DNA of 64,000 nt, from positions 6,696,001 to 6,760,000 of the forward strand of contig CATNEN010000002.1 of assembly GCA_950097015.1 (NCBI GenBank), given 5' to 3'. Below are positions 35,401 to 56,609 of the stretch, piece after piece. Position 1 is the stretch's first letter; each line of letters starts with the position of its first letter. The position numbers were made by a program, and so were the translations under genes. The DNA comes from Macrostomum hystrix (Eukaryota; Animalia; Platyhelminthes). The notes under the pieces are model-generated. The model was not told where the DNA came from. It saw nothing but the letters and a program-made list of their open reading frames with translations, and did not search any database.

Positions 35401-38400
35401 TCTAATGGGATCAGTTCCCAATGAGTTCTGTGGGATTCTAATGGGATCAATTCCCAATGAGTTCTGAGGGATTCTAATGGGATTAGTTCCCAATGAGTTC
35501 TGTGGGATTCTAATGGGATCAGTTCCCAATGAGTTCTGTGGGATTCTAATGGGATCAGTTCCCAATGAGTTCTGTGGGATTCTAATGGGATCAGTTCCCA
35601 ATGAGTTCTGTGGGATTCTAATGGGATCAGTTCCCAATGAGTTCTGTGGGATTCTAATGGGATCAGTTACCAATGAGTTCTGTGGGATTCTAATGGGATC
35701 AGTTCCCAATGAGTTCTGAGGGATTCTAATGGGATCAGTTCCCAATGAGTTCCCAAGGTAATTGATAGGAAAAACCCGTTTTATTTGCCAGAGGATATGC
35801 GACTGTTAAATCACTAGTCTTTGTTTTTTTATAAGAAAACATATTTTGCCTACAATAGCACAAAAAGAGATTGGAATGAATGAATGGTAATGATATGGAA
35901 AACAGCATTGCTACAGTGTCACGAAATATCATCTCGCTTTTCTTTGATTTTCCATTAATTGTTTTGCAAGATAGTCCAGTCTAAGCTAGCAGATGGCAAA
36001 TTTTCTGTTCAAACGAGAAGCATTAAAAATATTGTCAATCGTCAGGGACTCTTATGCAGAACACTGTAGAACATTGTTAGTATATAAAAAAATATAAAAG
36101 ATAATTGGCAAATTCTAAATAATGATCAATAATCAAAATACAGGTCGATAATTGGACGATTCTAAATACAGATCGATAATTGGAAGATTCAAAATACAGA
36201 TCGATAATTGGTAGATTCAAAATACAGATCGATAATTGGTAGATTCAAAATACAGATCGATAATTGGTAAATTCTAAAAACTGATCGATATTTGGTAAAT
36301 TCTAAAATACAGATCGATAATTGGTAGATTCAAAATACAGATCGATAATTGGAAGATTCAAAAATACAGATCGATAATTAGTAAATTCTAAAAACAGTTC
36401 GATATTTCGTAAATTCTAAAATACAGATCGATAATTGGTAGATCCAAAATATAGATCGATAAATGATAGATAAAAAATATAGATCGATAATTGGTAGATT
36501 CTATAGCAGATCGATGACTGATCGATTTCAAAAACCTATTTTAGACTCCCAACGCAGATTGATACCTGCTATATTCCCACAACCTGTAGTAATATAGTTT
36601 GTTATAATTGTGATTCAATCTGATTGGCTCATTCCAACAAACCCTTCGCCAGCTACAAGTCAGGCAAGACCGCCACAGGAGAAGCCTTCCAGCTCATCCG
36701 CGAGCTCGGCTTCCTGCCAGAGAACGGACACCGTCGGGACGCCCGCTCGATTGTTGTCCTGCTGACTGACGGACGCGCCAACGGCCGGGTGAACGCCGTG
36801 ACCGAGTCTGCCCGCCTTCGCGGCTCCGGGGTTGGTGCCAGCGTCCTCGCCATCGGCATCGGCTCCGGTGTTTCGCGAGGCTCCCTGCAGCTCCTGGCTG
36901 GCGAGGCCAAGCGGGTGACGCTGGTCAACGGCTTCGATGACCTCGGCAAGGTCAGCCGCCTGGTTACCAGCGTGCTCTGCGGCAGCTCCGACAGTGGAGC
37001 CGCAGTTGCCGCGGGTGTGAGCGTCAAGACCTGCGGCGTTGGACTGAAACTCATCGCTGGAGTCTGCGTGCCGGGTAGCCACTTTGGGAGTTCTTGACCT
37101 TGAGGGATATCACTCAACCTGAGCAGATTTCACTTAACCTGAGGAGATTTCACTCAACCAGAGGGGATTTCACTCAACCTGATGGGATAAAAGTTGCATG
37201 CCTAACTCTCATTTTCTCATCTGCCCCTCGCAGTGAAGCCAAAGTGTCGCCGTGTCTGTCCCAAGGGCTTCCTGCTGGTGCACCCCTGCAACTGTACCCC
37301 GGATGTTGCTGTCGGCTCCGGCTGCGTCAAATCGTGCCGCGAGTCCGAGATCCTCGTCCGCGGCTGCGTCTGCGTGCCGCGTCACGTGCCATCGAAGGCG
37401 GCAAAGCCGAAGGTGTGCAAGAAGGCCTGCCCGGAGGGCAAAAAGCTAAATGCAGCCAAGTGCAAGTGCGGTAAGTTGCTATGGGCTAAAAAAGGCAGGT
37501 ACATAATTATCCTCTGAACTCTGACACCCAGGTAGATAACTATCCACTAAACTCCTGACACCCAGGTAGATAATTATCCACTAAACTCCTGACACCCAGG
37601 TAGATAATTATCCACTAAACTCCTGACACCCAGGTAGATAATTATCCACTAAACTCCTGCCACCCAGGTAGATAATTATCCACTAAACTCCTGCCACCCA
37701 GGTAGATAATTATCCACTAAACTCCTGACACCCAGGTAGATAATTATCCACTAAACTCCTGCCACCCAGGTAGATAATTATCCACTAAACTCCTGACACC
37801 CAGGTAGATAATTATCCACTAAACTCCTGCCACCCAGGTAGATAATTATCCACTAAACTCCTGCCACCCAGGTAGATAATTATCCACTAAACTCCTGCCA
37901 CCCAGGTAGATAATTATCCACTAAACTCCTGCCACCCAGGTAGATAATTATTCGCTAAACCTTGACACCTTCAGAATGCGAGTCGAAGTGTCCCGGGCCG
38001 AACTTCTCGCAGGCTGCCGAGGACTGCTCATGCGCCTGCAGCATGCGCTGCCGACCTGGCCTGGCGCTCAATAAGAAGACCTGCGAGTGCCAGATGGGTA
38101 CGTGCAAACTGGATGGCCCAGTAATTCGATGATTGATGATTCGGATTTCATCGATATTCGTACCATTTCAGTGGACTGTCCGCCACACTTCGAGTACTTC
38201 GACGGTCGATGCAGGCACATTGTGAAGCGACTGTGCCCAGCCGGTCAGATACTGTTTAGGGACGTCTGCAAGCGAGGCAAGTCCAACTCTCTGGCTCTGA
38301 CTCTCACTGCTGACTCTCTAAATCTGGTATCTGACTCTCACTGCTGACTCTCTAAATCTGGTATCTGACTCTCACTGCTGACTCTCTAAATCTGGTATCT

Positions 38401-41400
38401 GACTCTCACTGCTGACTCTCTAAATCTGGTATCTGACTCTCACTGCTGACTCTCTAAATCTGGTATCTGACTCTCACTGCTGACTCTCTAAATCTGGTAT
38501 CTGACTCTCACTGCTGACTCTCTAAATCTGGTATCTGACTCTCACTGCTGACTCTCTAAATCTGGTATCTGACTCTCACTGCTGACTCTCTAAATCTGGT
38601 ATCTGACTCTCACTGCTGACTTCTAAATCTGGTATCTGACTCTCACTGCTGACTTCTAAATCTGACTCTCCGAATCTGACATCCGACTCTCCGAATCTGA
38701 CATCCGACTCTCCGAATCTGACATCCGACTCTCCGAATCTGACATCTGACTCTCCGAATCTGACATCCGACTCTCCGAATCTGACATCTGGCTCTCCGAA
38801 TCTGACATCTGGCTCTCCGAATCTGACATCTGACTCTCCGAATCTGACATCTGGCTCTCCGAATCTGACATCTGGCTCTCCGAATCTGACATCTGACTCT
38901 CCGAATCTGACATCTGGCTCTCCGAATCTGACATCTGACTCTCCGAATCTGACATCCGACTCTCCGAATCTGACATCTGGCTCTCCGAATCTGACATCTG
39001 ACTCTCCGAATCTGACATCTGACTCTCCGAATCTGACATCCGACTCTCCGAATCTGACATCTGGCTCTCCGAATCTGACATCTGACTGTCCGAATCTGAC
39101 ATCTGACTCTCCGAATCTGACATCTGACTCTCCGAATCTGACATCTGACTCTCCGAATCTGACATCTGGCTCTCCGAATCTGACATCTGACTCTCCGAAT
39201 CTGACATCCGACTCTCCGAATCTGACATCTGGCTCTCCGAATCTGACATCTGACTCTCCGAATCTGACATCTGACTCTCCGAATCTGACATCTGGCTCTC
39301 CGAATCTGACATCTGGCTCTCCGAATCTGACATCTGACTCTCCGAATCTGACATCTGACTCTCCGAATCTGACATCTGACTCTCCGAATCTGACATCTGA
39401 CTCTCCGAATCTGACATCTGACTCTCCGAATCTGACATCTGACTCTCCGAATCTGACATCTGACTCTCCGAATCTGACATCTGACTCTCCGAATCTGACA
39501 TCTGGCTCTCCGAATCTGACATCTGACTCTCCGAATCTGACATCTGACTCTCCGAATCTGACATCTGACTCTCCGAATCTGACATCTGACTCTCGGAATC
39601 TCAAGCCTGACCCGGATGTCTCTATTGACTTTTGTCTGATTTCCATCAATTAAAATTACTCCTTCTGACTGTCTGGCTCAGGAAAATGTTCTGTTCTAGT
39701 CGTGATTGCGTGAAATTCGCTCGAAAATCAAATTAAAACGGGAAAAACTGCTTGGCCAGCGGGACTACTTACAAATGAGTCACGAACTTTGCTCACCCGA
39801 TTCCCCCCTGAAAGGTCATTCCTGTCCGAAGGGCTACGAGCTTCACCGAGACAGAAAATGCTACAAAGTCGGCTGCGAGCCGGGATACAAGAAGGCCAAG
39901 GACGGCAGCTGCAAGAAGAGTGAGCTGGGAGCGACCGAGGGAGGGGGAAAAGTATTGGGAGAAAGGGGAGGGGGAAGGGAAAAAAAGAGAATAGGTTAAG
40001 GGGAAAAGATAGAGAGAGAATGGAGAAGGGGGAAGTATTTGGAGAATGGAGAAGGGGGAGAAGGATACAGAGAATGATGAAGGGGAGAAGGAGACAGAGA
40101 ATGATGAAGGGGAGAAGGAGACAGAGAATGAGGAAGGGGAGAAGGAGACAGAGAATGGGGAAGGGGAGAAGGAGACAGAGAATGAGGAAGGGGGGAAGGA
40201 TACAGAGAATGAGGAAGGGGAGAAGGAGACAGAGAATGAGGAAGGGGAGAAGGAGACAGAGAATGAGGAAGGGGAGAAGGATAGAGAGAATGAGGAAGGG
40301 GAGAAGGAGACAGAGAATGAGGAAGGGGAGAAGGATAGAGAGAATGAGGAAGGGGAGAAGGAGACAGAGAATGAGGAAGGGGAGAAGTATAGGGAGAGTG
40401 GGGAAGGAGGAGACGAATGGTTATACTTTACTCTTAACTCTTTAATTAATTCGAGTGATTGCATTTGGCACTGATTCTACTACTTTTTGAACTTTTATAT
40501 CCTAATAGATTTTAAATTTGAGTAGATTTTTCTAACTTAAATGGTAAAACTATCGTAAAACCCCCTGTTGTCAGTGTGCTCTGGCAAGCGGTATTACTAC
40601 AACCGCCGCTGCCACGAGCCCATGACCTGCGGAAAACGGAAGTACTTCCGTGTTAGCGCCAGCGGCTGCCCACGCACCTGCGCGGAGCCCGTCAGGCTGA
40701 CCCGCTGCCCCAAGGAGCGCCAGCCGGCGTGCGTGTGTCAGCCCTACTACCTGCTGCTCAATGGCAAATGCGTGCACCCCAGCGACTGCCCGAATGTGCC
40801 AAGTGAGTCCACACTGAGAGGGTCGTGGGTATTAAGGGGTTGTGGGGGCGGAAGGATTGTGGGTTTTAAGGGGTTGTGGGGGGCGGAAGGGTTGTGGGTT
40901 TTAAGGGGTTGTTTTGGCGGAAGGGTTGTGGGTTTTAAGGGGTTGTGGGGGCGGAAGGGTTGTTGGTTTTAAGGGGTTGTTTTGGCGGAAGGGTTGTGGG
41001 TTTTAAGGGGGTTTAGGGGGCAGAAGGGTTGTTGGTTTTAAGGGGTTGTTTTGGCGGAAGGGTTGTGGGTTTTAAGGGTTTTAGGGGGCAGAAGGGTTGT
41101 TGGTTTTAAGGGGTTGTTTTGGCGGAAGGGTTGTGGGTTGTAAGGGGGTTTAGGGGGCAGAAGGGTTGTTGGTTTTAAGGGGTTGTTTTGGCGGAAGGGT
41201 TGTGGGTTTTAAGGGATTGTGGGGGCGGAAGGGTTGTAGGTTTTAAGGGGTTGTTTTGGCGGAAGGGTTGTGGGTTTTAAGGGGGTTTAGGGGGCGGAAG
41301 GGTTGTTGGTTTTAAGGGGTTGTTTTGGCGGAAGGGTTGTGGGTTTTAAGGGGGTTTAGGGGGCAGAAGGGTTGTTGGTTTTAAGGGATTGTTTTGGCGG

Positions 41401-44400
41401 AAGGGTTGTGGGTTTTAAGGGTTTTAGGGGGCGGAAGGGTTGTGGGCTTTGATGGGTTGTAAGGGCTGATAGAATTTTGAGCTTCAAGAGCTATAGACTT
41501 TTTGGAGTTATAATAACTCGTATATTAAACATTTCTAAATCCTAGAAGCTAGAATTAATTATTTTAAGTATTAATGGCTCTGCGACTTGGCTTTCCGAGT
41601 GAAATTGGACACACTGAATAAAATGTCACGTCATCGCATCATGAGACGAAAGTACTCGTACAATTTTAGTAAATTTTTCTGCTTTTAAAAGCCAGAAATT
41701 GTTCTGGAAAGCAACGATGGGTTTTTGCGTTGCCTCTGCAGAGCATTAGGAGAATCGCATCAAACTTTATAATTTGATGGTATCCGTCCATTAAAAATGT
41801 TTTAAAAAGAAAGAATAATAATTGTGCTCAGGATTTGCCTTAAAAGTGCATCAATCCCACAGGTATTAGACTGGTCCCTGGACAGCTTAGCTTGATTGCC
41901 ACCTGCTACCTGTATGACCAACTGCCTTGGCCCTTCTCGCGCAGTGTCAATTGATGAAACCTCGGCTTGTACTTTTAAATTGCTTTTTGATCTGATACAA
42001 AATGCGGACTAAAAAGAAGAGTGGAGCCTCACAGATGCTCAGAATCTATAACTTGGGCTCTGCTGCAGTAGTTCAGAGTGAGAGCAGTGGTGATTGACAT
42101 GTTTTCGACGGCAGTCATTGATCCATTGCCAGTGACGCCCCGGGCGCAGAAACCCACCTATTCTGCTTCATCGATGATAGAGTAGATTGCTGGCCCTGTC
42201 ACTTCATTGATTTTTGGGCCACTGAAGCTGCGGGCGCGTCTCCAAGCTATCAATAACTGCGGTGTCTGAGCTAAGATAAGAGGCTGTGTGCTGAGACTTG
42301 GAAAAGCTTTAGAAGTCTGACACAATTCTCACGCAGTCGGCTGCACGATGACTCTCGCGCGTCAGCATCCGTCGCGTCATTCGAGCCCGACTTTCGCAGG
42401 CTGTCTTCCTTAATCCGCGGATTAGCGTGCACTTGCGCGCTTCAAGGGGCCTCAGTCAGACATGGTCCCTGAGGAATGGGAGAGGAAAAGATGCTCTTGC
42501 TCCAGTTAGAACAGTTGATACAGTGATACTTAATGATCTGGAGTAATTCTGGTTACAGGGACGATCCGCAATGTGATAAAGACATGATTCCATTTTGTTT
42601 TCCAAACTGATCACGCCTCATTATGAGACACTTTGAGTAGCAATTTGAGTAGCTGGGCAGGTGATCTTCAGATAATATCATTATGTTATTTACAATTTAC
42701 CACTACCGAAGCCTAAAATTAAAATGAAGTTTCATATTCAACTGCTTAACAATCCTTTTTGCCACTCACAAGTTTGCATCGAGAAGGCCGATGTGATCTT
42801 CATGCTGGACTCCTCGCTGACTGTGACTGAGCACAACTTCTACATGATGAAGAACTTTGTTCGCGACGTTGTGCAACAGTTCTACCTTCGCACCGGCACT
42901 CGACAGCGCGTTGGTGTCATGCGGTTCAACCACCGAGCCGACATCATTATGGACCTCGATAGCTGGCAGCGGCACAGCCACGAGGACATCCAGAAGCAGA
43001 TCGAGGCCCTCGAGTACCAGCCAGGCCTCACCTTCCTGGGCGAGGCGTTGCACACCGTGCGCACCCGGATGTGGCGAAAGCGCGCCGGTATGCGCGAAGA
43101 TGTTCCGCGCGTCACCATCCTGCTGACGGATGGTACGGACACGAATGGCCAGGTGGACCAGTACTACGAGGCTGAGAAGCTTCGCGAGCTTGGCGTTTTC
43201 TTCGTCACTATCGCCATGGGCGACCAGATTGGAGTCGGCGAGAACAGGCGCAGCCTCGAGAAGCTGGCCGGCCCAGAGGGCCGCGTCTTCATCTTCGGCC
43301 TGCATGACTTCCAGGACATCCACGGCCTGGTGTCCCGAGTGCTGTCATTCCACTGCGAGCGACCACGTAAGTGCACGCAATTTTTCTGAGACTTGCATGT
43401 TGCGTGCATTCTGAATTGTCTGATGAAAATATTTGTGCACCCCTCAGTGTGCCCGCATCCCTACCTCATCTACGGAGACTGCATCGGCGACTACAAGTCA
43501 ATCAGCCGGGTGGAGTACATCTCCGAGAAGTTCCGCTGCAAGAAGACAGTGCGGCACGACTTCAAGCGAATCCGCTGCGCCTGCCCTAAGCCCGACGTGA
43601 AGGAGGGCCCCTGCGTGAAGATGTTCAGAACGGTGGCACGAGGTGTCTACACTCTGGACAAAAAGGCCGGCATCTGCAAGGCCAAGTTCAAGGACTCCAA
43701 GGCCAGGTGCGCCTGCCCCGCCGACAAGGTGGTGGAGAGCCGCTGTCTGAACTACAAGCGTACAGTGACAACCACCGCCTTCACTCTCGTGCGCGCAGGT
43801 AGCGAGCCGGAGAGCGCCAAGTGCATACCGAAGACCACAACAAAGACATTGCGATGCGGTGAGTTGGTGTTCAGTCCTGACGGAGGTTCTCTGCAACCAA
43901 GGGGCATTAGGACATTTTAGTCTTCTTTAATGAACATTTAATTTTTATCGTCTTCGTGGTTCGTTCGTGACTTTCATCACGGATCACAATACGTTGTGAA
44001 TTTCTTAGCACTGGTACTGTACTTTTTCGCTCGTCATGAAACTAATGGCATAGGTACATTGAACACATAAATTTCTAGTAGGATATAAAGAACTGACGTA
44101 GAATAATTATCCGATGAAAATTTCGACAACACGATGCCTGCAGCATCGGTCGTGTAAATGTTTTACAAAGTTTATACGTAGTACAGTACTTAAGAAGCAA
44201 TGCGTTGCGCCCAATGAACATGAGAACTGTGATGCTTCACAGAAGCCAAAATAAATACACGTCGCAGTGTCCTCAGAGTGACAGCCGGTGCTAACAGCAC
44301 CCATCCTTGATCTGATCATCCGCGGTTCAGTTTCTAGCTAAAAATAAAAGGTGAGAACCGAATGACTGTACGTTAGAAACTAACGTGCATATTGTACATA

Positions 44401-47400
44401 TAGCATACATATTGTACATAAGTACAGTACTGCAGCACAAGGAGCGGATGCAGAGCATATATGGACAGTGGCAAACACCAAGTCAAGTTCTTAAAAATCC
44501 TTTGAAACTGCAATAAATTGGGCTCCAGTAATTTTTAAGTGGCTGTTAAAGCATAAAACAGATTCTTGAGCTCTGGCTCCGCTCTTGGCTGTCCAGCAAG
44601 CCAGTGTACAATTGTATGAGTTGCCAAGGCATCCGGAAGGATAACGGCTAAGATTTTGTTTGCGAAACTCACTCGAAATGGAAAACGGACTAAGAACAGA
44701 ATTAAAAGAACAGAATTAAACAAAATATGACACATGATTTTGCTTTCCGGATGTCTTCAGGCAGAGAATAGACAAACAGCTTCATACTGAAAGTTATCTG
44801 AAAAGCAATGGCTTTGCAGTCCGTTGTGTTCCTTTGCTGCTAGTTTAGCAGGTCTTTGTATCGACTAGCTTTTCTATGCAAACATCTTTCAAACAGTTAT
44901 GAACCAGCCTTTTGTTGATTAAAGAGAGTTTCAGTCTGACATAAAAGCACCTCGATGAGTCTCCTGATGTGAGCAACTGACGCGTGGCATTCCCCACCTG
45001 TTGTAGCCTCCGGGTACATCACGCTCAAGTACAAGCTGATTGACGAACCACCAGTGCTGAAGAAGCTGATCAAAGAAAACGTCGAAACGGTGATCAACCT
45101 AATGGCGGAGTCACTGGCTGACGCCCTGAAGCTCAAGAAGTACCAGGTGGCCGACATGAAGCTGAACGCTGACCTGCATGGCTCCTGCAAAGTGCCCTAC
45201 AAGGCAGCGCATCCATTCGCCGTGCTGGTGAAGTCAGACACTTTCAACTTCTTGTGGAAAAAGTCCAAGTTCAAGTTTAATCCTAAGTCGGTCAAGGTTA
45301 TCCTGCCTGGTAAGCTTCGGAGTTAAACGAACGGACACTTTAATTGTTTTCTGACATAAAATCGTAATAACGTAAGATTCAAATTTAGGAACATTGGTCA
45401 GTTTTCGCTAAGTGATATTCCAACAAGCATACTGCGCTTACCTTGCAGAGTGTCCGAAGCCGATTCGAAAGGAGGGTCCCTGCCTGCACAACTTCAAGCT
45501 CATCTACGAGACATTGTACAAGTTCGAGCACAAGTCGCTCAGCTGCGTAAAGATCACGCGCACAAAGGAGCTCAGGTGCTCGTGTCCAAAGCCAGTGGTG
45601 GAGACTGCTCACTGCAATGGAAAGTTCGTCCCAATCAAGGTCTACGAGCAAAGGGTCAACAAGCACAATGGCTGCAATGACATCTTGTGGACGGGATCGG
45701 CAAAGTGCGCTCGGTCGTGCAGCAAGCGCACCGATGTGGCCTTCGTAATCGACTCGTCTGACTCAGTGCGCGGCGCGAACTTTGAATATATTCGACGATT
45801 CATAGTTGCTGTAGCAAAACGGCTGGACGTGTCGCGCGACAACACTCACATCGCCGTGCTCAAGTACTCAAGCGTCGAGCAAATGAAGGTGGTTTTCAAC
45901 TTCGTGGCCCACTACAACTTCAAGTCCATGGCGCAGAGAGTGATGGAGATGCGCTACTCACCGGGCTCCACCTACACCGGCGACGCTCTGCGGAACTTCC
46001 GCCGCTTCCTGCTGAACTCCATCAACGGCTACCGCGGTGGCTCGTCGTCCGGCGTCGAGAGCGTCGTCGTGCTCGTGACCGACGGAGCGTCGAACAGTGC
46101 CATCGATCCGGTGAAGGAGGCCAGCAAGATCAAGGCACTCGGCTGCAGCATCGTCACAATTGGTGTCGGCGACGACGTTCAGAGCAAGGAGCTGGCGAAG
46201 GTCGCGAGCGAGCCGGCCGCGATCCACAGCTTCAAGGCGGACTCGTTCCGCGACCTCGTCGACTCGACGTTCGTCGAGTCAGTCGTGACGGCTACATGCC
46301 GAGTTGGAAAAGTCAATAAAGTTGCTGTTAAGCAACAGTGGACAAGTGAGTCCTTGCAGATGATAAAAACACTTTTGTTCTGTGTTACTAAGGAATTTTA
46401 GGTTAAAGTTAACGAGTCATCTTGCCTATCTTTCAGATAAAATTAGAGACCTCATGGCTCGAAAGATCGAACTGAACTTTGCCGATTTGGGCCTGACTAA
46501 GTTCGATCGTAAGTTTTTTGTGTTCTATTTTTTATAATTATGCATCACGTGCAAATATTTTCGGCGCAGTTGTTCATGGGAGCAAGCAAAATCACGAAAC
46601 TTTGCAGCCAAAGACCTGGCCCGATTTGAGTTCCGCCTTGAGGGTACCTACAGCGCCATTGTTGGCTCGACCCAGATGGCCAAGTCGACCTTCTTGTCGC
46701 GTGTTCGCGACGTTCTTGCTGAGGCGCTCTCCCTGCACCCGTTCAGCATCAGGAAGCTGCAGGTGACCAACAAACTCATTCTCAGCGGTCAGATCAGTGC
46801 AGCCAAGCTTGACAGGTTGAAGTCTCTAATCAAGGCTGATAAGCTGAAGCTCGGATGGCGCGGTTCGGCTTTGAAGATCGACAAGTCGAGCTTCGCCGTT
46901 TTATCTCCAGGTGAGAGAAGTCGTCGATTATGCTTTTGTTTCTAGCACACACGAAACTTTTACCTGGGGGCTGTGGGCACTGACGCTTCAGAAGGCTGCA
47001 GGCGATCCGTTGACTAAGAAGAGGCGCGATTCTGCTTATCGACATCTAAACCTTAAGCACACGTGAGCATCACTGACACACACGCACACAGGAATGTACA
47101 TCTGCTCTGAATTCTCCATCATCAGGTCGTGTCAATGTACAGTTAGCCTGTGTACACTCGAATGTGGACGTCTAGTTGGGCAGAGGGGTTTTTCAGGGGC
47201 AGGAAAACGCCAGCCAGTGCTATGTACATTGCCATCCTTTTAAAACCAACTGGGATTAAAATGTACACAAGAGACTAGCCACACCGCCTGCAAAGAATGG
47301 GTCCCTTCCCTCCGCTTCACACCGCAGCCTCCCTGCAAACTGTCCGGCTGGCCTCGACCTCAGCCGACCTGGCTACGGGCGTCACCCGGCCCCTCGGCCG

Positions 47401-47938
47401 CCTGCTCGCCGCCGCCCGCCTGGCCGCCAAGCGCATCCCGCGCAAGGATGCTCGCCGCCTGGCCGTGCGCGAAGTTGCCGAGCTCAGCCAGCTGGCGGAA
47501 ACCTCCGGCAAGGCCGTGGACGAATTGACCGAGCTGGCCGCCAAGGCACGCAAAACGGCGGACAAAGACGCTGCCAAGAGCTGCCTGAAGCGGCTGCGGG
47601 TGGTGCTGAGCTCCGCGGAGCGTCTGTCTAGACACTCCATGTACATCGCTTACTTCTCGCCCAAGGCCGAGCGAGACCAGATTGAGCACAGGCACGATCG
47701 CGTAGCTGAGCGTATCGCCTCGGCGGCGGCTCGGGTCAAGGCCATCCTGACAGCCCCGCTCGATGCCAAGGACGACAAGAAGAAGGAAGAGAAGACGGAC
47801 AAGAAGGAAGAGAAGACGGAGAAGAAGGAAGAGAAGAAGGATAAGAAGGAGGCTAAGAAGGAGGCTAAGAAAGAAGCTAAGAAGGAAGCTAAAAAAGAGG
47901 CCAAGAAGGACGCAAAGAAGAAGTCCAAGGCCAAGTAA
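32457..47938 (+). CDS. Large secreted VWA / Cys-rich / TIL / TSP1-like / SEA-like modular protein, isoform with terminal cassette A (~1600 aa)
   Basis: Exons: 32457-32598 (signal peptide), 34575-34824 and 36653-37074 (VWA1, DSSHS..TDG), 37234-37470, 37975-38097, 38172-38276 (GC donor), 39815-39919, 40575-40802 (TIL), 42773-43366 (VWA2), 43448-43858 (3 Cys repeats), 45007-45309, 45449-46345 (2 Cys repeats + VWA3), 46437-46508, 46608-46910, 47328-47938. All phases join in frame (4803 nt). Confidence 0.88.
32660..32855 (+). mobile_element. SINE family B copy, VWA gene intron 1
   Basis: GAGTTCAAATC...TGTGTGCTTGAGCAAGACACTTA...CATCTATAAAATGGG...CCCCAGTCCACGGACTGAA. Confidence 0.75.
33215..33275 (-). 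mobile_element. Isolated tRNA-like SINE head (family B-like)
   Basis: Reverse complement contains GGTCGAGAGTTCGAATCTCAGCC, similar to the head of the 32660 copy. No complete cloverleaf. Confidence 0.45.
33530..33832 (+). mobile_element. SINE family A copy, VWA gene intron 1
   Basis: GGTAGAGCGGCTAGCGCG head, family body with internal deletions and an AATTATTATTATT tail. Confidence 0.8.
34394..34520. repeat. 18-bp minisatellite (AGGTCAGGAATATCTGAC)n
   Basis: About 7 units ending ~55 bp before the exon 2 acceptor. Confidence 0.93.
34853..35755. repeat. 36-bp minisatellite (GGGATTCTAATGGGATCAGTTCCCAATGAGTTCTGT)n
   Basis: About 25 near-identical units with no spacers, in VWA intron 2. Confidence 0.97.
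36130..36510. repeat. ~28-bp minisatellite (AAAATACAGATCGATAATTGGTAGATTC)n
   Basis: About 13 degenerate units in VWA intron 2. Confidence 0.9.
37100..37188. repeat. ~20-bp short tandem repeat (TGAGGRGATTTCACTCAACC)n
   Basis: 4-5 degenerate units in VWA intron 3. Confidence 0.8.
37515..37952. repeat. 34-bp minisatellite (CTGMCACCCAGGTAGATAATTATCCACTAAACTC)n
   Basis: About 13 units occupying most of VWA intron 4. Confidence 0.96.
38297..38660. repeat. 34-bp minisatellite (CTGACTCTCACTGCTGACTCTCTAAATCTGGTAT)n
   Basis: About 10 units at the start of VWA intron 6. Confidence 0.96.
38661..39600. repeat. 21-bp minisatellite (CTGACTCTCCGAATCTGACAT)n
   Basis: About 45 units directly following the 34-mer array. 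Source of the ESDVRFG / MSDSESQ ORFs. Confidence 0.97.
39960..40410. repeat. Purine-rich 27-bp minisatellite (GAGAATGAGGAAGGGGAGAAGGAGACA)n
   Basis: Almost entirely G/A tandem filling VWA intron 7. Confidence 0.93.
40815..41465. repeat. G/T-rich 34-bp minisatellite (AAGGGTTGTGGGTTTTAAGGGGTTGTTTTGGCGG)n
   Basis: About 19 units with dense G3-G5 runs at the start of VWA intron 8. Confidence 0.94.
47050..47170 (-). mobile_element. SINE family A, diverged fragment in the intron before terminal exon A
   Basis: Reverse complement TGTACA...CCTGATGATGGAGAATTCAGAGCAGATGTACA...TGTGCGTGTGTG resembles the family body. Confidence 0.55.
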
Positions 47939-48848
47939 ATTAACGCAGTACAGTTACTGAAAACTAACTAATTCTCATTACAGGCTCAAAGCAAAGTTGT
48001 TGTATTTGGTCTCAGAACCATTGGTTTAGTCAGAGTTCTCACGGGTGACTTGGTTCGAACGATTAGTACTGTTTTGTGTTTTCAAATTCGCGCCGAAAGT
48101 TTTGTTATGTTGAGAGAAAAAAGAGCAAATGTCTATTTTGTTGGCGAGTTAATGTCATATTTGGCGAAAAACTGCTAAAATACGTGGCTTTCATCTCTGA
48201 CAAACGCGATGAGAAAAGCCCAAACCTACTTTGCTGATTGCGGCCGGTAGCAACAAGGCGTATAATCCTATTTTTGTTCCTGTTATATCTGGAGTTAACT
48301 CCAGTTTCCTCTCTAAAAGCAGCACTGCATGTGGCATTGATGCCATGTCATTGGGAAGCATTATTTCCGTGTCGCTCAGACTAGGGAAAAACTGCGCGTA
48401 AATTTTAACCCTGCGGAAATCTTGCGAACTCAAACTAGAAATTCATCGTGCAGTGCTGCGAGCATGAATATGTAAAACTACGGTATCAAACGATGGTGTT
48501 TGGGATGCGAATAATTACTGTACCAGGGCTTGACGGCTTTATTATATGACGCGAGGATCTCGATAATGTAACAGTTGATAGAGCTGAAGATATAGGCACG
48601 GTCCAGAAATAAACCTTTTGGCATTGAAGTGGTCCCGCTGTTTTGCCCGGACTTTGTTTCACGACTTTTTCATTCAAGAGACCCAACTAGAACTGGTTGC
48701 GCAAAGTACGTTTCTACTCTTGCTTACTAAAAATGCGAAAGTTAGAGATTTTGTAAAACATGATGTGCTTATTACATCAGAACCAGACGCTCAAACTAAT
48801 ATCTACAGTCAAGCAGTAGGACATTCTCAGCCCTTTGTCACCCTTCAG

Positions 48849-51800
48849 CGTGCCCGAAGCCGCAACGCCTGGAAGATGAATGCCTGCACAACTTCAAGCT
48901 CGTCCACGAGATCCTGTACGAGTTCGAGCACAAGTCGCTCAGCTGCGTAAAGATCACGCGCACAAAGGAGCTCAGGTGCTCGTGTCCAAAGCCAGTGGTG
49001 GAGACTGCTCACTGCAATGGAAAGTTCGTCCCAATCAAGGTCTACGAGCAAAGGGTCAACAAGCACAATGGATGCAATGACATCTTGTGGACGGGATCGG
49101 CAAAGTGCGCTCGGTCGTGCAGCAAGCGCACCGATGTGGCCTTCGTAATCGACTCGTCTGACTCAGTGCGAGGTACAAATTTTGAGTACATTCGACGTTT
49201 TATCATCGCCGTGGCAAAACGGCTGGACGTGTCGCGCGACAACACTCACATCGCCGTGCTCAAGTACTCAAGCGTCGAGCAAATGAAGGTGGTTTTCAAC
49301 TTCGTGGCCCACTACAACTTCAAGTCCATGGCGCAGAGAGTGATGGAGATGCGCTACTCACCGGGCTCCACCTACACCGGCGACGCTCTGCGCAACTTCC
49401 GCCGCTTCCTGCTGAACTCCATCAACGGCTACCGCGGTGGCTCGTCGTCCGGCGTCGAGAGCGTCGTCGTGCTCGTGACCGACGGAGCGTCGAACAGTGC
49501 CATCGATCCGGTGAAGGAGGCCAGCAAGATCAAGGCACTCGGCTGCAGCATCGTCACAATTGGTGTCGGCGACGACGTTCAGAGCAAGGAGCTGGCGAAG
49601 GTCGCGAGCGAGCCGGCCGCGATCCACAGCTTCAAGGCGGACTCGTTCCGCGACCTCGTCGACTCGACGTTCGTCGAGTCAGTCGTGACGGCTACATGCC
49701 GAGTTGGGAAAGTGAACAAAGTCTCCGTGCTGGAGCAGTACACCCGTGAGTGCCTCACTCCCAAGAATAGTTTCATTTGTAATTGCTTAGCATCTGTCGG
49801 CCATTTGATGGATGGCTTCTTGTTGCTTGGTGCTGGTCCCCGCTCCCATTTTAATTGAATCCGTCCGGCTGCGTACGGGCCTGCCTGCACACTTTTCATC
49901 CACTTGCCCTTCCCCTCTTTCCTGGAAGTCGCTGTCAGCACTTTAGGGCGCGCATAATTTTTTCTCTGAAGCCCCCTCTCTACTAAAGCCTCAATTTGCA
50001 CTCACGCTTCCGTTGAGTGTGTCTGGTCTCATTCCCCACCGCTTAGCTCGAATTCCGCTGCTTCTAACCATCTCCCACCTCTGCCCAGTCTTCTGCCCGC
50101 GGCATCACAAATAATTGATTGATTTCTGAGCCCCGTTTAGGCCTGAGCGACATTGCTGAGTGTCCGTCCGCCCCGCAAGTTAATTTCACCGACCTGTTGC
50201 CACCTTGAGTCTATCACCAGAGCTTTGGTCTAATCTTTGGACTAATCACATTTTACTCTTCGATTCATTCTCTTTCAGAAATTTTGCGCACTGCGCAGGC
50301 TAAAAATTTTGATGTCGACTGGAAGAAGTTTGGCTTCACAAGGCTTGAGTGTGAGTCCTTTGTTTTAGTTTTTGCTGCCTTTTTTTTCTACTCGGTCATG
50401 TTGTCAGATGTTGGGCTGTGGTGACCCGATACTACTCAGATTGCCAGACTAGGAGCACAGTCGCTTTGAGTCGTTTTGAGTCGTTGCCTCACAGTTTTTG
50501 TTTGAAAAGAACGCTCAGCTGCCGCGTTGAAGGCTTTCAAAACGGAAGTGGACTCAGCTGTCCCCGGCAATTACCTGATTGAGCTGACAGGGCAATGTCC
50601 GGCAGAATCCAGGTGCCTTGGCTGTTAATTAGGGCCCCTCCGAGCTAATCACCGGCCCGAGCCAGGAAACTGCAAAACTCCGGACTGAGAAGGGGAGGGG
50701 AGATCAATTAGAAAACGGTGAGTCGACTCGGGCAGGCCAGGAAGTTGCTGAAATGCGTCAGCAGCCCTTTGAATTGCCGGTGCGATTTCCTACGAGCGCT
50801 TCTTCAGGTTGAGTTGGAAATCTATTCTCTTTGACCGTGGGGCAATATTGAAATATAAATCTATTACTCTTTCAATGGAAGATGGGTTGCAATGGGATTC
50901 CAGGAGGGGATGCAGGATATTATGCATATTGTGGGGTGGATGTCTCGTTCAAGGGATCGTTTTATTACACCGGCCCCAATCGGGCCAGCAATCTAAAAGC
51001 TGCGTGAGGCTTGGACTGGTCCATGGCGTCCATGGACTGGGGGGACGCCATGCTCAACCCTTAACTACCCAGCTAATGCTGGAACCCATTTAACAGCGGG
51101 GGTGAACTGAAGCAATGCAGATTTCTAGAAAAATGGGATTTCTAGTAGAATGAGATTTCCAGTAGAATGGGATTTCTATTTGAATGGAATTTCTATTTGA
51201 ATGGGATTTCTATTTGAATGGGATTTATATTTGAATGGGATTTATATTTGAATGGGATTTCTATTTGAATGGGATTTCTATTTGAATGGGGTTTCTATTT
51301 GAATGGGGTTTCTATTTGAATGGGGTTTCTATTTGAATGGGATTTCTATTTGAATGGGATTTCTATTTGAATGGGATTTCTATTTGAATGGGATTTCTAT
51401 TTGAATGGGATTTCTATTTGAATGGGGTATTTCATGGGACAATGTCTCATAAATTGCGCACTATCTGCATCTGTCCCTTTTTCATCGCTCGTTGCAGACT
51501 CCCAACTCGCGGCAGTCAGTTTCAAGCTAATTCAAGTCCCGGATGCGCCAACTGTTTCCATAGCAACTATGCGTCATCGGGAAGCTCTCGGGTCGGCGAT
51601 GCGGTCGGCCCTGACCGGCGCCCTCCGCCTGCACCCGTTCGCGGCCGCCCGACTGCGCCTTCGTCCGCCGTCAGGACTGTCGGGCTCGGTTCGACTTCCG
51701 GCTGAGAAAACCGACTCGCTGAAGAGGCTGGTCCGCAGTGGCCAATTCCAATTCGACTGGTCCGGCGCCACGTTTAAAATTGATCCGAAGTCTCTGAGCA

Positions 51801-54800
51801 TCGTGTCTCCAGGTGCCGACACTGTGACTAAATATCATTGTCTAACAGGTCTAACATGAGATAGTAATCCCTTGTCTAACAAGTGAACCATAGAGCAGGA
51901 ATCTCTTGTCTAACAGGTCTACCATAGAACAGGAATCCCTTGTCTAGAAGGTCTTCCATAGAACAGGAATATTTTGTGTAACATGTCTATTATAGAACAG
52001 GAATATTTTGTGTAACATGTCTATCCCAGAACAGGAATATTTTGTGTAACATGTCTATCATAGAACAGGAATCTCTTGTCTAACAGTCCGAATATAGAAC
52101 AGGAATCTCTTGTCTAACAGTTCGAATATAGAACAGGAATCTCTTGTCTAACAGTTCGAATATAGAACAGGAATTTCTTGTCTAACCGTTCGAATATAGA
52201 ACAGGAATCTCTTGTCTAACAGTTCAAATATAGAACAATAATCTCTAGTCTAACAGGTCTAACATAGTACATGAATCCCTTGTTTAACAGGTCTAACATA
52301 GAGCAGAAATTTCTTGTCTAACAGTTCGAATATAGAACAGGAATCTCTTGTCTAACAGTTCGAATATAGAACAGGAATCCCTTGTCTAACAGTTCAAGTA
52401 TAGAACAGGAATCCCTTGTTTAGCATGTCTAACATAGAGCAGAAATCTCTTGTCTAACAGTTCGAATATAGAACAGGAATCTCTTGTCTAACAGTTCGAA
52501 TACAGAACAGGAATATATTGTCTAACAGTTCGAATATAGAACAGGAATCCCTTGTCTAACAGTTCGAACATAGAACAGGAATCTCTTGTCTAACAGGTCT
52601 AACATGGAGCAGAAATCTCTTGTCTAACAGTTCGAATATAGAACAGGAATCTCTTGTCTAACAGGTCTAACATGGAGCAGAAATCTCTTGTCTAACAGTT
52701 CGAATATAGAACAGGAATCTCTTGTCTAACAGGTCTATCACGGAACAGGTCGAACATAGAACAGGAATCCAATATCTAACAGGTCTAACATGATCAGTTG
52801 TTGAAAGTTTTGGACAGACAAGGCGAGTTTATAAATTACATGGGGATGTCTCGCAGCTCTGTTAGATTTCCAAATTCTCCCGCGCGGTGTTGGGTTTCTC
52901 TCCGAGTTGGGGTGGGTGCGCTGTGATTTTTCCTAACGAATCAAATGTAAAAATCGTGCGAATATCTGCGCCGGTCTCTGAGCCGACTGCCCACTCCCAG
53001 CCAGCGGCCCCCTGGGGTCACGTGTCATCCGGCTGCGCTCCTCCATAAGACTTCTCCCGACAATTCTCTCGATCCCATTCCCCGACCTGTCCAGCTAGTG
53101 TATCGATTCATCTGGCCCTAACAAATCAGGGATAGTGAAGTGGAGTAAATCAACAACTTGATGAGACCCCCGCAATGGAATGCTTGCGTCAGTGCCATCT
53201 GGATGCCCTCAGTCTACTGAGTAAAGCATCGAGGCTGCATTTTGTGTCAGCTTAATTTGGGCCAAGAATTTTAATGGGCAAGTTCAGTTTGCAGTCCCAT
53301 GGCAGAGCAGCTATCGCCAGTTGATCCCATCCCAAGTGGATCCCATCCCAAGTTGATCCTATCCCAAGTTGATCCCATCCCAAGTGGATCCCATCCCAAG
53401 TGGATCCCATCCCAAGTTGATCCCATCCCAAGTGGATCCCATCCCAAGTGGATCCCATCCCAAGTTGATCCCATCCCAAGTGGATCCCATCCCAAGTGGA
53501 TCCCATCCCAAGTGGATCCCATCCCAAGTGGATCCCATCCCAAGTTGATCCCATCCCAAGTGGATCCCATCCCAAGTGGATCCCATCCCAAGTGGATCCC
53601 ATCCCAAGTTGATCCCATCCCAAGTTGATCCAATCCCAAGTTGATCCCATCCCAAGTTGATCCCATCCCAAGTGGATCCCATCCCAAGTTGATCCCATCC
53701 CAAGTGGATCCCATCCCAAGTTGATCCAATCCCAAGTCTATTCCATCCCCAGTTGATCTCATCGTCCCTGACCCATTCCATTTATAAAAGATCCCACTCC
53801 TACGTGATCCCATAGCAAGTTTATCTCATCTAGAGGCTGTTCCCATCACGAAGAATATCCCATTCCGTTCGATCTCAATCTGACCTCCACCGACCCTCCA
53901 GAGGCCACTGACGCCATCCGCCAGGCGCAGCTGGCACCAGACCTGGCCCTAGACGCTTGGCGCCCACTTCGTCGACTTGTCCGACGCGCCGAAGAATCGG
54001 CACCGCGAATTCGACGCGACGACGCAAGGCGCCTGGCCTTCGATGAGCTGCGCCGCCTCAACAAGCTTCTGGCCAGCTCTGAGCGGCGTCTGGACCGGCT
54101 GGCCACTGATTGCTCAGCTGCCGTTGCCGCAGCCAGCGACGGTAGCAGCCGAAGCAGACTGCAGCGCCTCTTGCGCAGCTGCGCCGATTCCACTCAGCGT
54201 CTGCTCACCGACGCCGCCAAGGTGGTGCGCCGCGTCGGCTACGTCAGGTACTTCGTCCAGGCCGGCGATTGGGCCAACATGCGGCATGGCGAGAGGAGGT
54301 GAGGAGCGATAGGATTTCTGGTGTGATGGGATGTCTGGTGTAATGGGATGTCAGGTGTGATGGGATGTCAGGTGTGATGGGATGTCAGGTGTGATGGGAT
54401 GTCAGGTGTGTTGGGATGTCAGGTGTAATGGGATGTCAGGTGTGATGGGATGTCAGGTGTAATGAGATGTCAGGTGTGATGGGATGTCAGGTGTGATGGG
54501 ATGTCTGGTGTAATGGGATGTCAGGTGTGATGGGATGTCAGGTGTGTTGGGATGTCAGGTGGGTGTGTTGGGATGTCAGGTGTGATGGGATGTCAGGTGT
54601 GTTGGGATGTCAGGTGTGATGGGATGTCAGGTGTGATGGGATGTCAGGTGGGTGTGTTGGGATGTCAGGTGTGTTGGGATGTCAGGTGTGATGGGATGTC
54701 AGGTGTGATGGGATGTCAGGTGTGTTGGGATGTCAGGTGTGTTGGGATGTCAGGTGTGATGGGATGTCAGGTGTGTTGGGATGTCAGGTGTGATGGGATG

Positions 54801-56004
54801 TCAGGTGTGTTGGGATGTCAGGTGTGATGGGATGTCAGGTGTGTTGGGATGTCAGGTGTGAGTGGATTTCAGGCTTCAGACAGTATGTACTTGAAAGATT
54901 TTGCATCCGGGTATCCATAGTCATGAAGTCTGGGAATGTTTTCAGATTATATGAGGGGATATTAAGGCCTCTCAATATCTGATGTGACATTAATCTCATA
55001 GCTCGTGTCTGATTTAAATTTCATTCACACTGATGGATGGGTAACGTCGGGTTGGTATGAAAGCAGAGAGAGAATTCATATTTTATCATGATTTTTTTCT
55101 TCAAATAGCTAACAAGAGAGAGGTCCCTTGGCTCCATTGTTTGTGAGTTGATGTGGATAAAACAATCAGAGTTACTGCTTGATTTAGTACGCATATAGCG
55201 TTAAAAACGGTTTAGATTACGTTTTTAGCTAGGCTTTTAGTACACGGCACAGCATCAGGCGCGCGCTTTCAAAATTCAGATTTTAATTTTACGACGAGCT
55301 TTCTGCGTGTGATTCTAAAATTAGCCGTAACACACTACTCTGGCGTAGATCCGACTTAGTCTTCTGTGATTGGCCACCAGCCAAGCGCCCTGACTCCCTG
55401 CTCACGTTCCAGAGTCTCCCGGCGAGTGACTCGAGCCCGAGACCGTCTGCCCGCACTGCTTCCGCTGGCCAACCAGCCGGTGCCGACGCCGCCGCCGCCT
55501 CCCACCGGCCCGTCGCTAGCTGAACTGCGCCGTCGCGCCCTGGTAAGCCTGACGCTCGGCGTGCGCGAACTCCGACGCCTCCACCGGGCGCTGTTCGCCG
55601 CGCACCGCCTGACTTTCACCGGACTGCAGCCGGCGCTGACCAGAGCCCGCGGCGAGCAGCTGGACCGGTTGGACAACCGTCTGAGAAGATTTGCCGCCGT
55701 CCGCAACGCGGTTTCAAAGGCCTACTCGAAACTGGCGATGCCGCCAGATGCTTCGGGTGCAGTTCTGTCCGAGGACTCTACGTCGAAGCCGATTGAAGAC
55801 TACCTGGCGACACTGATCCGAGCCGCTGACGAGGCCGATCAGCTGCCTGCGCAGGCGCGCTCTGTGGCCGCGGTGCATCCAGCGGCAGCCGACGGTTTGG
55901 CGCGCCTGGCACCGGGCCTCGCCTCCGCGGCGGAGTCGTTGCGCGAGGCCGCAGCTCGGATAGGGAAAAATGTGCGCCAATTTCGCAAGATGCCCAAGCA
56001 CTAA
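48849..56004 (+). CDS. Duplicated terminal cassette B of the VWA gene (alternative 3' exon set; full isoform ~1730 aa)
   Basis: Exons 48849-49745 (897 nt, same length as 45449-46345), 50279-50350 (72 nt, same as 46437-46508), 51498-51812, 53902-54298 and 55413-56004. All GT-AG and in frame to TAA at 56004. Begins in phase 1, compatible with the donors at 43858 and 45309. No own ATG or signal exon found between 47938 and 48849. Confidence 0.82.
51015..51120 (-). mobile_element. SINE family B fragment
   Basis: Reverse complement CTGCATTGCTTCAGTTCACCCCCGCTGTTAAATGGGTTCCAGC...CCCCAGTCCATGGAC. Confidence 0.75.
51125..51430. repeat. 17-bp minisatellite (GAATGGGATTTCTATTT)n
   Basis: About 18 units, in a cassette B intron, starting where the SINE fragment ends. 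Confidence 0.95.
51835..52795. repeat. 34-bp minisatellite (AACAGGAATCTCTTGTCTAACAGTTCGAATATAG)n
   Basis: About 28 units with variant subtypes, in a cassette B intron. Confidence 0.95.
53325..53745. repeat. 16-bp minisatellite (GATCCCATCCCAAGTK)n
   Basis: About 26 units with decayed flanks, in a cassette B intron. Confidence 0.96.
54315..54860. repeat. 17-bp minisatellite (GTGTGWTGGGATGTCAG)n
   Basis: About 32 units starting ~15 bp after the 54298 donor. Confidence 0.96.
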
Positions 56005-56609
56005 CGCTTGGCGTCTCAGCGACAGACAGCCATTGCTGAGAATTTTCAATTGTCTATGGTCATTCTTAGCGAAAAGTACACATTTCTAGAAACGGTTCGA
56101 GTGGGTTCGATGCGATCGCACTTCAAGCATGAGGTGGTTTTCGGACACTATTCCATCCCATTCCTGAACCTTTTCTGGATTGCTAAACAACCGTTCTTCA
56201 AAAATTTCCTAACTGACTATATAATGCGATGAATCGGAATAATATGATACTGAAGAGTGCTTCGTTCCATTATCTGGCTGGATAGTATATTCTTTACTGA
56301 ATGATTGATTGTTTTAAAAACAATGGTCTCATTTATGTCCACATTTATGTGAAAGAATCGATGATATTTTCTTAGCTCTGCTTAGAATCAAACGTAGAAC
56401 AAGTTTATACTTTTTAACCCTCATCCCGTAGTGCGTACGGCTCTGAATTTGTATTATGTAATCTCGAAATTCGAAATTCATAACCTATTTTCGCTGCAAT
56501 AAATGGACTAGATTTTGACTAGTGCATACGAGCTATTACATAACTCGTATTATGTGTTAAAAATTTGTCGATCCTAATTGTGTTGATTAAGAACAAGAAG
56601 CTGATCAGC

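Follow-up and report, generated by a model that had tools for sequence, protein, structure and literature searches.

Introduction

The Drosophila genes lola, fruitless and mod(mdg4) combine shared 5′ exons with alternative sets of 3′ terminal exons, as do, more generally, genes with alternative last exons. In the three Drosophila genes, common N-terminal exons and one donor serve several downstream sets that each supply a stop codon, and the products differ at their C termini. The gene described here, from Macrostomum hystrix, lies in a window of 64,000 nucleotides, the whole stretch of DNA that was analyzed, and appears to share this layout. Unlike lola, fruitless and mod(mdg4), it has two sets only, both of them multi-exon and each a homologous copy of the other. 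The Drosophila proteins are BTB transcription factors, whereas the product considered here, known from genomic sequence, is predicted to be a secreted VWA protein.

A second point of comparison is provided by mutually exclusive exons that arose through tandem duplication, as treated in two reviews (PMC9013439, PMC9741552). As in those systems, the duplicated units are homologous, of the same length and phase, old, and constrained in both copies. The unit in the window gene, however, is a whole terminal cassette of four to five exons rather than a single internal exon, and, unlike in exons whose exclusivity is enforced by the reading frame, inclusion of both cassettes would remain in frame. A further difference is that one exon pair of the window gene is homogenized by gene conversion while the rest diverges.

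The same order of modules (VWA, TIL, VWA, Cys-rich, VWA, tail) is found in two M. lignano proteins, the orthologue PAA85945.1 and the paralogue A0A1I8HJC7 (Mlig011403 group, 1470 aa). Each known M. lignano protein has one tail type, whereas the window locus holds both in tandem, together with an extra module exon.

Results

Two homologous cassettes with intact frames

The 3′ part of the gene comprises a proximal cassette of four exons, A1–A4, and a distal cassette of five, B1–B5 (Table 1). The common module order, the matching exon sizes (897/897, 72/72 and 303/315 nt), the coordinates and the phases given in the initial annotation were all reproduced, as were the intact frames, separate stops and phase-1 entry acceptors that it ascribed to both cassettes. 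All splice sites are AG acceptors and GT donors. The internal exons of both cassettes enter and leave in phase 1, with the sole exception of B4, which leaves in phase 2. The phase-1 donors at 43858 and 45309 fit the phase-1 acceptors at 45449 and 48849, and every join reads through to a stop belonging to the cassette itself, at 47938 in A and at 56004 in B. In shuffled sequence, open tail frames arise by chance with a probability of about 1e-5 for A2–A4 and about 1e-5 for B2–B5.

Table 1. Features of the 3′ region of the window gene, in window coordinates. Percentages are identities to the sequence named.
Feature	Position	Strand	Description
Last exon common to both forms, Cys-rich CPKP module	43448..43858	+	phase-1 donor GCG|gtgagttg
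Candidate looping arm	44158..44176	+	complementary to 48743-48761, 88 nt upstream of B1 acceptor
SEA0, extra M3-like exon	45007..45309	+	303 nt, phase 1-1, open frame, canonical sites
A1, CPKP-rich stretch and VWA domain	45449..46345	+	897 nt; Pfam VWA E 2.5e-38
Gene-conversion tract 1 in A1	45521..45770	+	partner 48921-49170; 1 difference/250 nt
Gene-conversion tract 2 in A1	45814..46307	+	partner 49214-49707; 1 difference/494 nt
A2	46437..46508	+	72 nt, type-II-like; 57% to C7, 17% to B2
A3, α/β-sandwich module	46608..46910	+	303 nt; 49% to C7, 33% to B3
A4, terminal exon: four-helix bundle, K/E-rich charged helix, stop	47328..47938	+	42% to C7 tail
B1, CPKP-rich stretch and VWA domain	48849..49745	+	897 nt; Pfam VWA E 2.2e-38; 82% to PAA85945.1
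B2	50279..50350	+	72 nt; 68% to PAA85945.1
B3, α/β-sandwich module	51498..51812	+	315 nt; 54% to PAA85945.1
B4, helical tail, first part	53902..54298	+	phase-2 donor; 73% to PAA85945.1
B5, B-specific terminal exon and stop	55413..56004	+	64% to PAA85945.1 residues 1435-1620

The modules that follow the VWA exon are homologous between the cassettes but distant, with amino acid identities of 17%, 33% and 33%, and the introns of A and B cannot be aligned. The last exon of the distal cassette, B5, is present in a single copy genome-wide and showed no similarity when compared with A4 and B4, so that it has no counterpart in A. The idea that B5 is a diverged second half of A4 was rejected, since it resembles neither exon.

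Both first exons match the VWA family PF00092 far above the Pfam gathering cut-off of 23.8 bits, with scores of 132.5 bits for A1 and 132.7 bits for B1. The 303/315-nt module has no Pfam match. Its fold was modeled on B3 from a four-sequence M3 alignment, and the model (pLDDT 85) is an α/β sandwich that Foldseek matches best to SorCS2 and to the C-domain of EpCAM/Trop2 (E 2e-3 to 1e-2, TM 0.6–0.68); the SEA domain of MUC16 was matched with an E of 0.08. The structure model of A4 has a pLDDT of 84. The extra exon upstream of A1, SEA0, is 25–30% identical to the M3 modules (37% over 46 aa, E 4e-7, in a tblastx comparison with B3) and has no equivalent in either M. lignano protein. As judged from its domains, the product of the gene is a predicted extracellular multi-VWA/TIL protein.

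The distal cassette matches the tail of the M. lignano orthologue

The orthologue PAA85945.1 (Mlig006812), on which a literature search found no published paper, is a protein of 1621 aa with two further near-identical copies. It is collinear with window exons 34565–43860 at 55–77% identity, reaching 76% between its residues 530–868 and the last two of these exons, 42724–43389 and the last common exon, taken together. After the shared exons it continues with a VWA exon, to which A1 is 83% identical at the amino acid level, and then with B2–B5 at 50–73% identity. M. lignano gene models are RNA-seq-based (PMC5730564). Joining 43858 to 48849 gives the junction ‘RC[A]CPKP’, identical to that in PAA85945.1, and the B4–B5 junction, ‘HGER[R]VSRRV’, matches ‘HGERRVHRRV’ in the orthologue; all five B junction codons agree with PAA85945.1. 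On this comparison, B5 is real coding sequence.

Because in the orthologue a VWA exon and a B-type tail follow straight on from the N-terminal exons, the normal M. hystrix mRNA must skip the ∼5 kb that holds A. Since the join from 43858 to 48849 reproduces the junction of an RNA-based orthologue, B would be spliced from the shared exons across the whole of A. The comparison thus shows the distal cassette to be the orthologous and, to judge by M. lignano, the normal tail, and the suggestion that B is spliced from a common upstream donor with A skipped is borne out by this junction and by the B-type tail running throughout PAA85945.1. A correction is needed to the length of the shared N terminus, previously put at ∼970 aa. 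As the orthologue lacks the 45007–45309 exon, the stretch that the B form has in common probably runs to about 868 aa and stops at 43858. A search with PAA85945.1 residues 530–1166 matched only M. lignano and distant proteins. The M. lignano entries for this gene were all of B type, and no A-type isoform on the N terminus of the window gene was among the matches.

Gene conversion in the VWA exons and the age of cassette A

At an exact offset of 3400 bp, the DNA sequences of A1 and B1 agree to 94.4%. This identity is the result of two recent gene-conversion tracts, inside which dS is 0.012, compared with a pS of 0.72 outside. The longest identical run, of 314 nt, was reached in 0 of 200000 permutations. 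Slow divergence is not the cause of the near-identity. At the sites that differ between A1 and B1, nearness to the paralogue C7 is split 19 versus 18, neither exon being favored. Where the VWA exon has escaped conversion, pN is 0.16 and pS 0.72.

Outside the tracts, A is separated from B and from C7 by pS values of 0.6–0.79, and synonymous sites are saturated against both. Between A and C7, pN is 0.34 and pS 0.73 in M2 and M3 together. Exons A2–A4, which lie outside the conversion tracts, are open over 325 codons, and A keeps 15 of the 20 columns in M3, and 25 of the 36 in M4, at which the other four sequences all agree. The split codons of A, N and A, are those of the mRNA-derived protein of the paralogue, and the A4 junction ‘SP[A]SL’ matches P0154, a protein of the paralogue. 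These observations show cassette A to be intact, old and, from pN well below pS and the retained split codons and invariant residues, constrained.

Cassette A resembles the C7 paralogue in its 897/72/303 exon sizes, its indels and its K/E-rich end. This tail type is also carried by a distant homologue, P0078, and A is therefore probably the ancestral tail. The paralogue, on contig C7, carries a single cassette, and no remnant of a B-type cassette was found downstream of it. The cassettes are not, as initially proposed, a simple duplicate pair that diverged afterwards. A did not arise recently by copying of B; its tail exons are of the C7 type. Both cassettes would be about as old as the split between the window gene and the C7 paralogue.

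Alternative explanations for cassette A

Considered together, these data make it probable that the locus is an old single gene with two alternative 3′ cassettes, of which the proximal one, A, is most likely an alternative ending. The two-cassette anatomy, the join to B in the orthologue and the constraint on A all uphold this part of the initial annotation; its account of the tail history and of the N-terminal length does not stand.

A1–A3, perhaps with SEA0, could instead be optional internal exons spliced to B1, with A4 rarely or never used, so that the product would have an extra VWA-plus-sandwich unit followed by the B tail. All exons from 45007 to 51812 are phase 1-1, the A3–B1 join reads through, and the gene is already built of repeated VWA, Cys-rich and sandwich modules. 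We nevertheless regard this arrangement as unlikely. A4 has an open frame of 203 codons, homologous to the terminal exon of the paralogue, with a good acceptor and the invariant columns noted above, all of which would be hard to explain if it were never translated, and the M. lignano orthologue has no such extra unit.

The synonymous saturation of A2–A4 also bears on whether A is an unused intronic remnant, the old tail having been replaced by B, with conversion from B1 preserving the open frame of A1, and chance that of the other exons. Conversion does account for how well A1 is preserved, the proteins known from M. lignano are B-type only, and a word-index protein search with A4 residues 1–150 found no A transcript. 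The exons beyond the reach of conversion, however, remain open in spite of that saturation (p about 1e-5), and their splice sites, split codons and invariant residues are conserved, with pN well below pS. A remnant of this kind is likewise unlikely.

Starts, ends and exclusivity

Cassette B was said to have no evident start or signal exon, and we found this to be so. The 910 bp preceding B1 (47939–48848) contain no ATG exon with a phase-1 donor, and A likewise lacks a start of its own, no signal-peptide ATG exon with a phase-1 donor being present ahead of A1. In the B1 frame, the first Met is not reached until the VWA domain. A spliced-leader AUG was considered as the start of B1 and rejected, as it is out of frame and runs into a stop codon 33 codons on. 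Macrostomum makes frequent use of trans-splicing and operons (PMC5730564), so that B, or A, might be an independent gene that has a promoter of its own or a trans-spliced 5′ end, but this is improbable given the empty scan ahead of B1, the out-of-frame leader AUG, the position of the first Met and an orthologue whose N terminus is joined to the B cassette. Fusion of two haplotypes or copies by misassembly, which the 94% identity of the first exons at an exact offset might suggest, is scarcely credible in the face of unalignable introns, tail exons that are 17–33% identical and fall into two old types, each matched by a separate orthologue or paralogue, and a B5 that occurs once in the genome.

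The reading of the locus as one gene with alternative endings raises the question of how the choice would be made. As double inclusion through the A3–B1 join causes no frameshift, the choice could be made exclusive only if transcripts terminate after A4 or if splicing is regulated. Past the A stop, no AATAAA occurs until 670 nt on; the certain 3′ ends, at B5 and C7, are equally without a nearby signal, so the motif scan is not discriminating in this species. A candidate pair of looping arms (Table 1), which might loop out cassette A, is 19 nt long and 84% complementary, with a 12-nt perfect core; complementarity of this extent was reached in 73 of 5000 shuffles in a post hoc test, and we note the pair as a lead only. 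Protein searches by word index and an exhaustive search, with queries that included B1, A4 residues 1–150 and PAA85945.1 residues 530–1166, returned no M. hystrix transcript-derived protein; the window exons were queried one at a time.

Discussion

In the model that we propose, the gene begins at ∼32457, where a signal peptide is encoded, and ends in one or other of two tandem 3′ exon cassettes. Its product would be secreted and would contain a TIL domain and several VWA domains. In the B form, the donor at 43858, and possibly also that at 45309, would be joined to the acceptor at 48849, skipping ∼5 kb in which A lies, with or without the 45007–45309 exon. In the A form, the acceptor at 45449 would be used and transcription or processing would stop after 47938. 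The A product would then have the same N terminus and the older tail type, consisting of an α/β module, a four-helix bundle and a long K/E-rich helix. The VWA exons alone would be held near-identical, through recent gene conversion. That A is used at all, that it provides the end of the transcript and that the two endings exclude each other are inferences.

The alternative tails may have been kept since before the split between M. hystrix and M. lignano, with an ancestral A and a derived B on one N terminus and with conversion within the exon keeping the VWA domains in step as the tails diverged. The paralogue, and perhaps M. lignano, would each have kept one tail. We put this history forward tentatively, as one that falls a little short of being favored.

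If transcripts confirm the model, the locus would be a clean natural case in which a whole multi-exon C-terminal half is exchanged through the choice of terminal cassette. Its history would be datable, with the older tail proximal, the derived tail distal and dominant in the sister species, the paralogue single-tailed, and gene conversion confined to one exon. If the alternative tails have indeed been kept for so long, concerted evolution would be acting on the “shared” module of alternative cassettes. For the annotation of Macrostomum genomes, a predictor that ends the gene model where the first stop occurs, at 47938, would overlook the orthologous tail, and one guided by the orthologue would bury cassette A in an intron.

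Architecture of the two 3′ cassettes

The downstream part of the gene comprises two tandem exon sets, cassettes A and B, with the same module order, matching exon sizes and the exon boundaries proposed in the initial annotation. All acceptors are polypyrimidine-AG and all donors GT, and every internal exon of both sets is phase 1-1, with the exception of B4, which exits in phase 2. In a DNA and six-frame comparison of 45001–48700 with 48701–56500, the single strong match is at module 1, where 45440–46322 and 48840–49722, exactly 3400 bp apart, share 95.5% identity over 883 bp; the later exons are linked by weak protein-level matches. A1 and B1 alike encode a VWA domain (Pfam E ∼2e-38) along with a Cys-rich stretch of the CPKP type. 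At the amino acid level, modules 1 and 2 of the two cassettes are 95% and 17% identical, respectively, and modules 3 and 4 are each 33% identical; B5 resembles no part of cassette A. An extra 303-nt, phase 1-1 exon, SEA0 (45007–45309), lies upstream of A1, after the last shared exon. This third and distant copy of module 3 is missing from both Macrostomum lignano proteins described below and from the paralogous gene on contig C7, and may be either an exon of optional use or what is left of another cassette.

Exons, paralogous gene, and intron minisatellites
Feature	Positions	Strand	Remarks
Module 1, A1	45449–46345	+	897 nt
Module 1, B1	48849–49745	+	897 nt
Module 2, A2	46437–46508	+	72 nt
Module 2, B2	50279–50350	+	72 nt
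Module 3, A3	46608–46910	+	303 nt
Module 3, B3	51498–51812	+	315 nt
Module 4, A4	47328–47938	+	stop
Module 4, B4	53902–54298	+	
Module 5, B5	55413–56004	+	stop; no A counterpart
C7 paralogue	G000:C7:9761452–9768949	minus	loci L006, L008; compact, ∼7.5 kb
Intron minisatellites	34400–35716, 38640–39650, 39924–40471		
Intron minisatellites	51132–51426, 51838–52732, 53319–53763, 54308–54873		

Module 3, modelled on B3, is predicted to be an α/β sandwich (pLDDT 85). It has no Pfam match, and its structural matches are weak (SorCS2, EpCAM/Trop2 C-domains and, lower down, MUC16 SEA), so that the label "SEA-like" is not established. In the A4 model, a four-helix bundle precedes a long charged helix; B4 corresponds to the initial three and a half helices, and B5 adds 196 residues. 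The introns of the gene are full of minisatellites with 16–36 bp units, several having a common GGGAT/ATCCC core. These generate long spurious ORFs in several frames, one of which begins 6 nt past the in-frame stop following the B4 donor.

Cassette B and the M. lignano orthologue

An exhaustive representative protein search with B1 yielded two full-length M. lignano proteins, P0003 and P0154. P0003 (PAA85945.1, BOX15_Mlig006812g2, 1621 aa), which has two near-identical gene copies, is collinear with window exons 34565–43860 at 55–77% identity (76% across the last two), and its shared part passes directly to the VWA exon, without the SEA0 module. This VWA exon is 83% identical to A1 and 82% to B1; thereafter P0003 matches B2 (68%), B3 (54%), B4 (73%), and B5 (64%). 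At all B junctions the split codons and flanks accord with those of P0003, the 43858→48849 join reading TLRC[A]CPKP (SMRCACPKP in P0003) and the B4→B5 join RHGER[R]VSRRV (RHGERRVHRRV). The M. lignano gene models derive from RNA-seq and genome-guided assembly, with trans-splice and poly(A) boundaries placed experimentally (PMC5730564). Given this collinearity and the matching junctions, the whole of B down to B5 is the window gene's orthologous tail, attached to the shared N-terminal exons. In M. hystrix, this join must skip SEA0 and all of cassette A, and the earlier proposal that B splices from the shared donor over the whole of A is thereby borne out by orthology.

An ATG exon ending in a phase-1 donor is absent from the 910 bp between the A stop and B1, in keeping with the initial view that B has no evident start or signal exon, and no ATG exon with a signal-peptide-like start precedes A1. 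Were B1 translated from a spliced-leader AUG joined at its acceptor, reading would end at a stop 33 codons on, and the first Met of the B1 frame sits within the VWA domain. The upstream exons start at 32457 with a signal peptide. Lacking a start of their own, both cassettes therefore rely on these exons.

A model of alternative 3′ cassettes

We consider it reasonably likely, and the best reading of the locus, that a single gene carries two alternative 3′ cassettes. The B form would arise by the 43858→48849 splice to the orthologous tail, and the A form by splicing into the 45449 acceptor, directly from 43858 or via SEA0, with termination past 47938. Sequence orthology shows the join of B to the N terminus, and cassette A is intact; that A is expressed, with A4 as its terminal exon, and that the choice is exclusive, as the initial annotation had it, we infer. 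The main rival is a long form in which A1–A3 are spliced on to B1, and this would stay in frame just as well, because all exons are phase 1-1. There is no canonical poly(A) signal near the end of A, but the same is true of the B5 and C7 ends, which are certain, making the motif uninformative. Word-index and exhaustive representative protein searches, with exons used singly as queries, found no M. hystrix transcript or protein.

We note that 44158–44176, just past the shared donor, is complementary to 48743–48761, 88 nt before the B1 acceptor (a 19-nt inverted repeat whose core of 12 nt is perfect), a match reached in 73 of 5000 position-restricted shuffles (1.5%) in a post hoc test. Such pairing would loop out cassette A and is a candidate lead only. 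Under the two-cassette model, the A and B forms would have distinct sandwich modules, bundles, and extreme C-terminal ends.

Origin and maintenance of cassette A

Cassette A is chimeric. Its A1 VWA exon clusters with B1 and P0003, whereas for A2, A3, and A4 the C7/P0154 type is the closer match (57%, 49%, and 42% identity, against 17%, 33%, and 33% with B/P0003), and they have the exon sizes, indels, and K/E-rich end of that type. P0154 (A0A1I8HJC7, 1470 aa), which shares a 90% cluster with P0006, is the orthologue of the C7 gene (74–93% identity). The latter has a single A-type cassette made up of 897-, 72-, and 303-nt exons and a final exon closing in a K/E-rich run, a long EKK repeat; no B-like remnant lies downstream. 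A distant homologue, P0078 (1364 aa, 36% identical, encoded on a 4842-nt contig assembled from a sequencing run), shows that the family extends beyond the two Macrostomum species. It has the VWA/TIL/VWA/VWA order of the family and a K-rich C terminus, and its tail is also of the A/C7 kind, so that the A type is probably ancestral and B derived.

Outside two tracts in exon 1 (see below), A, B, and C7 have reached saturation at synonymous sites (pS 0.60–0.79), and in the remaining parts of the VWA exon the three are equidistant (60–74% nucleotide identity). The A/B duplication thus dates from about the same time as the paralogue split, an event older than the divergence of M. hystrix from M. lignano. 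A decayed relic of such age would not be expected to look like cassette A, and this reading is disfavoured. Outside the tracts, A2–A4 are open for 325 codons (chance in shuffled sequence ∼1e-5), splice sites are canonical, and the split codons A1/A2 (N) and A3/A4 (A) are those of the paralogue's protein. Moreover, A retains 15/20 and 25/36 of the columns invariant in the other four sequences, and pN is well below pS both in the unconverted VWA-exon parts (0.16 versus 0.72) and between A and C7 in modules 2 and 3 (0.34 versus 0.73). The earlier suggestion that the diverged modules are open through selection rather than decay agrees with these values.

Conversion within a single exon

A1 and B1 differ at 50 sites, which are concentrated in exon positions 1–72, 323–365, and 860–897, with one difference each in positions 73–322 and 366–859. 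Within both of these tracts dS is 0.012, versus a pS of 0.72 outside. None of 200000 permutations produced an identical run as long as the longest one here, 314 nt (third codon positions only: 15 of 200000), and the introns flanking A1 and B1 are not alignable. Together, these features mark the A1/B1 near-identity as the result of recent conversion limited to one exon rather than of slow divergence. The tandem homologous sets are real, and comparison with relatives largely supports the two-tail interpretation, but their history differs from simple cassette duplication, in that A2–A4 are of the paralogue type and exon 1 has been converted. On this reading the locus would be a case of alternative terminal exon sets that arose by tandem duplication, and its uncommon feature is exon-limited concerted evolution.
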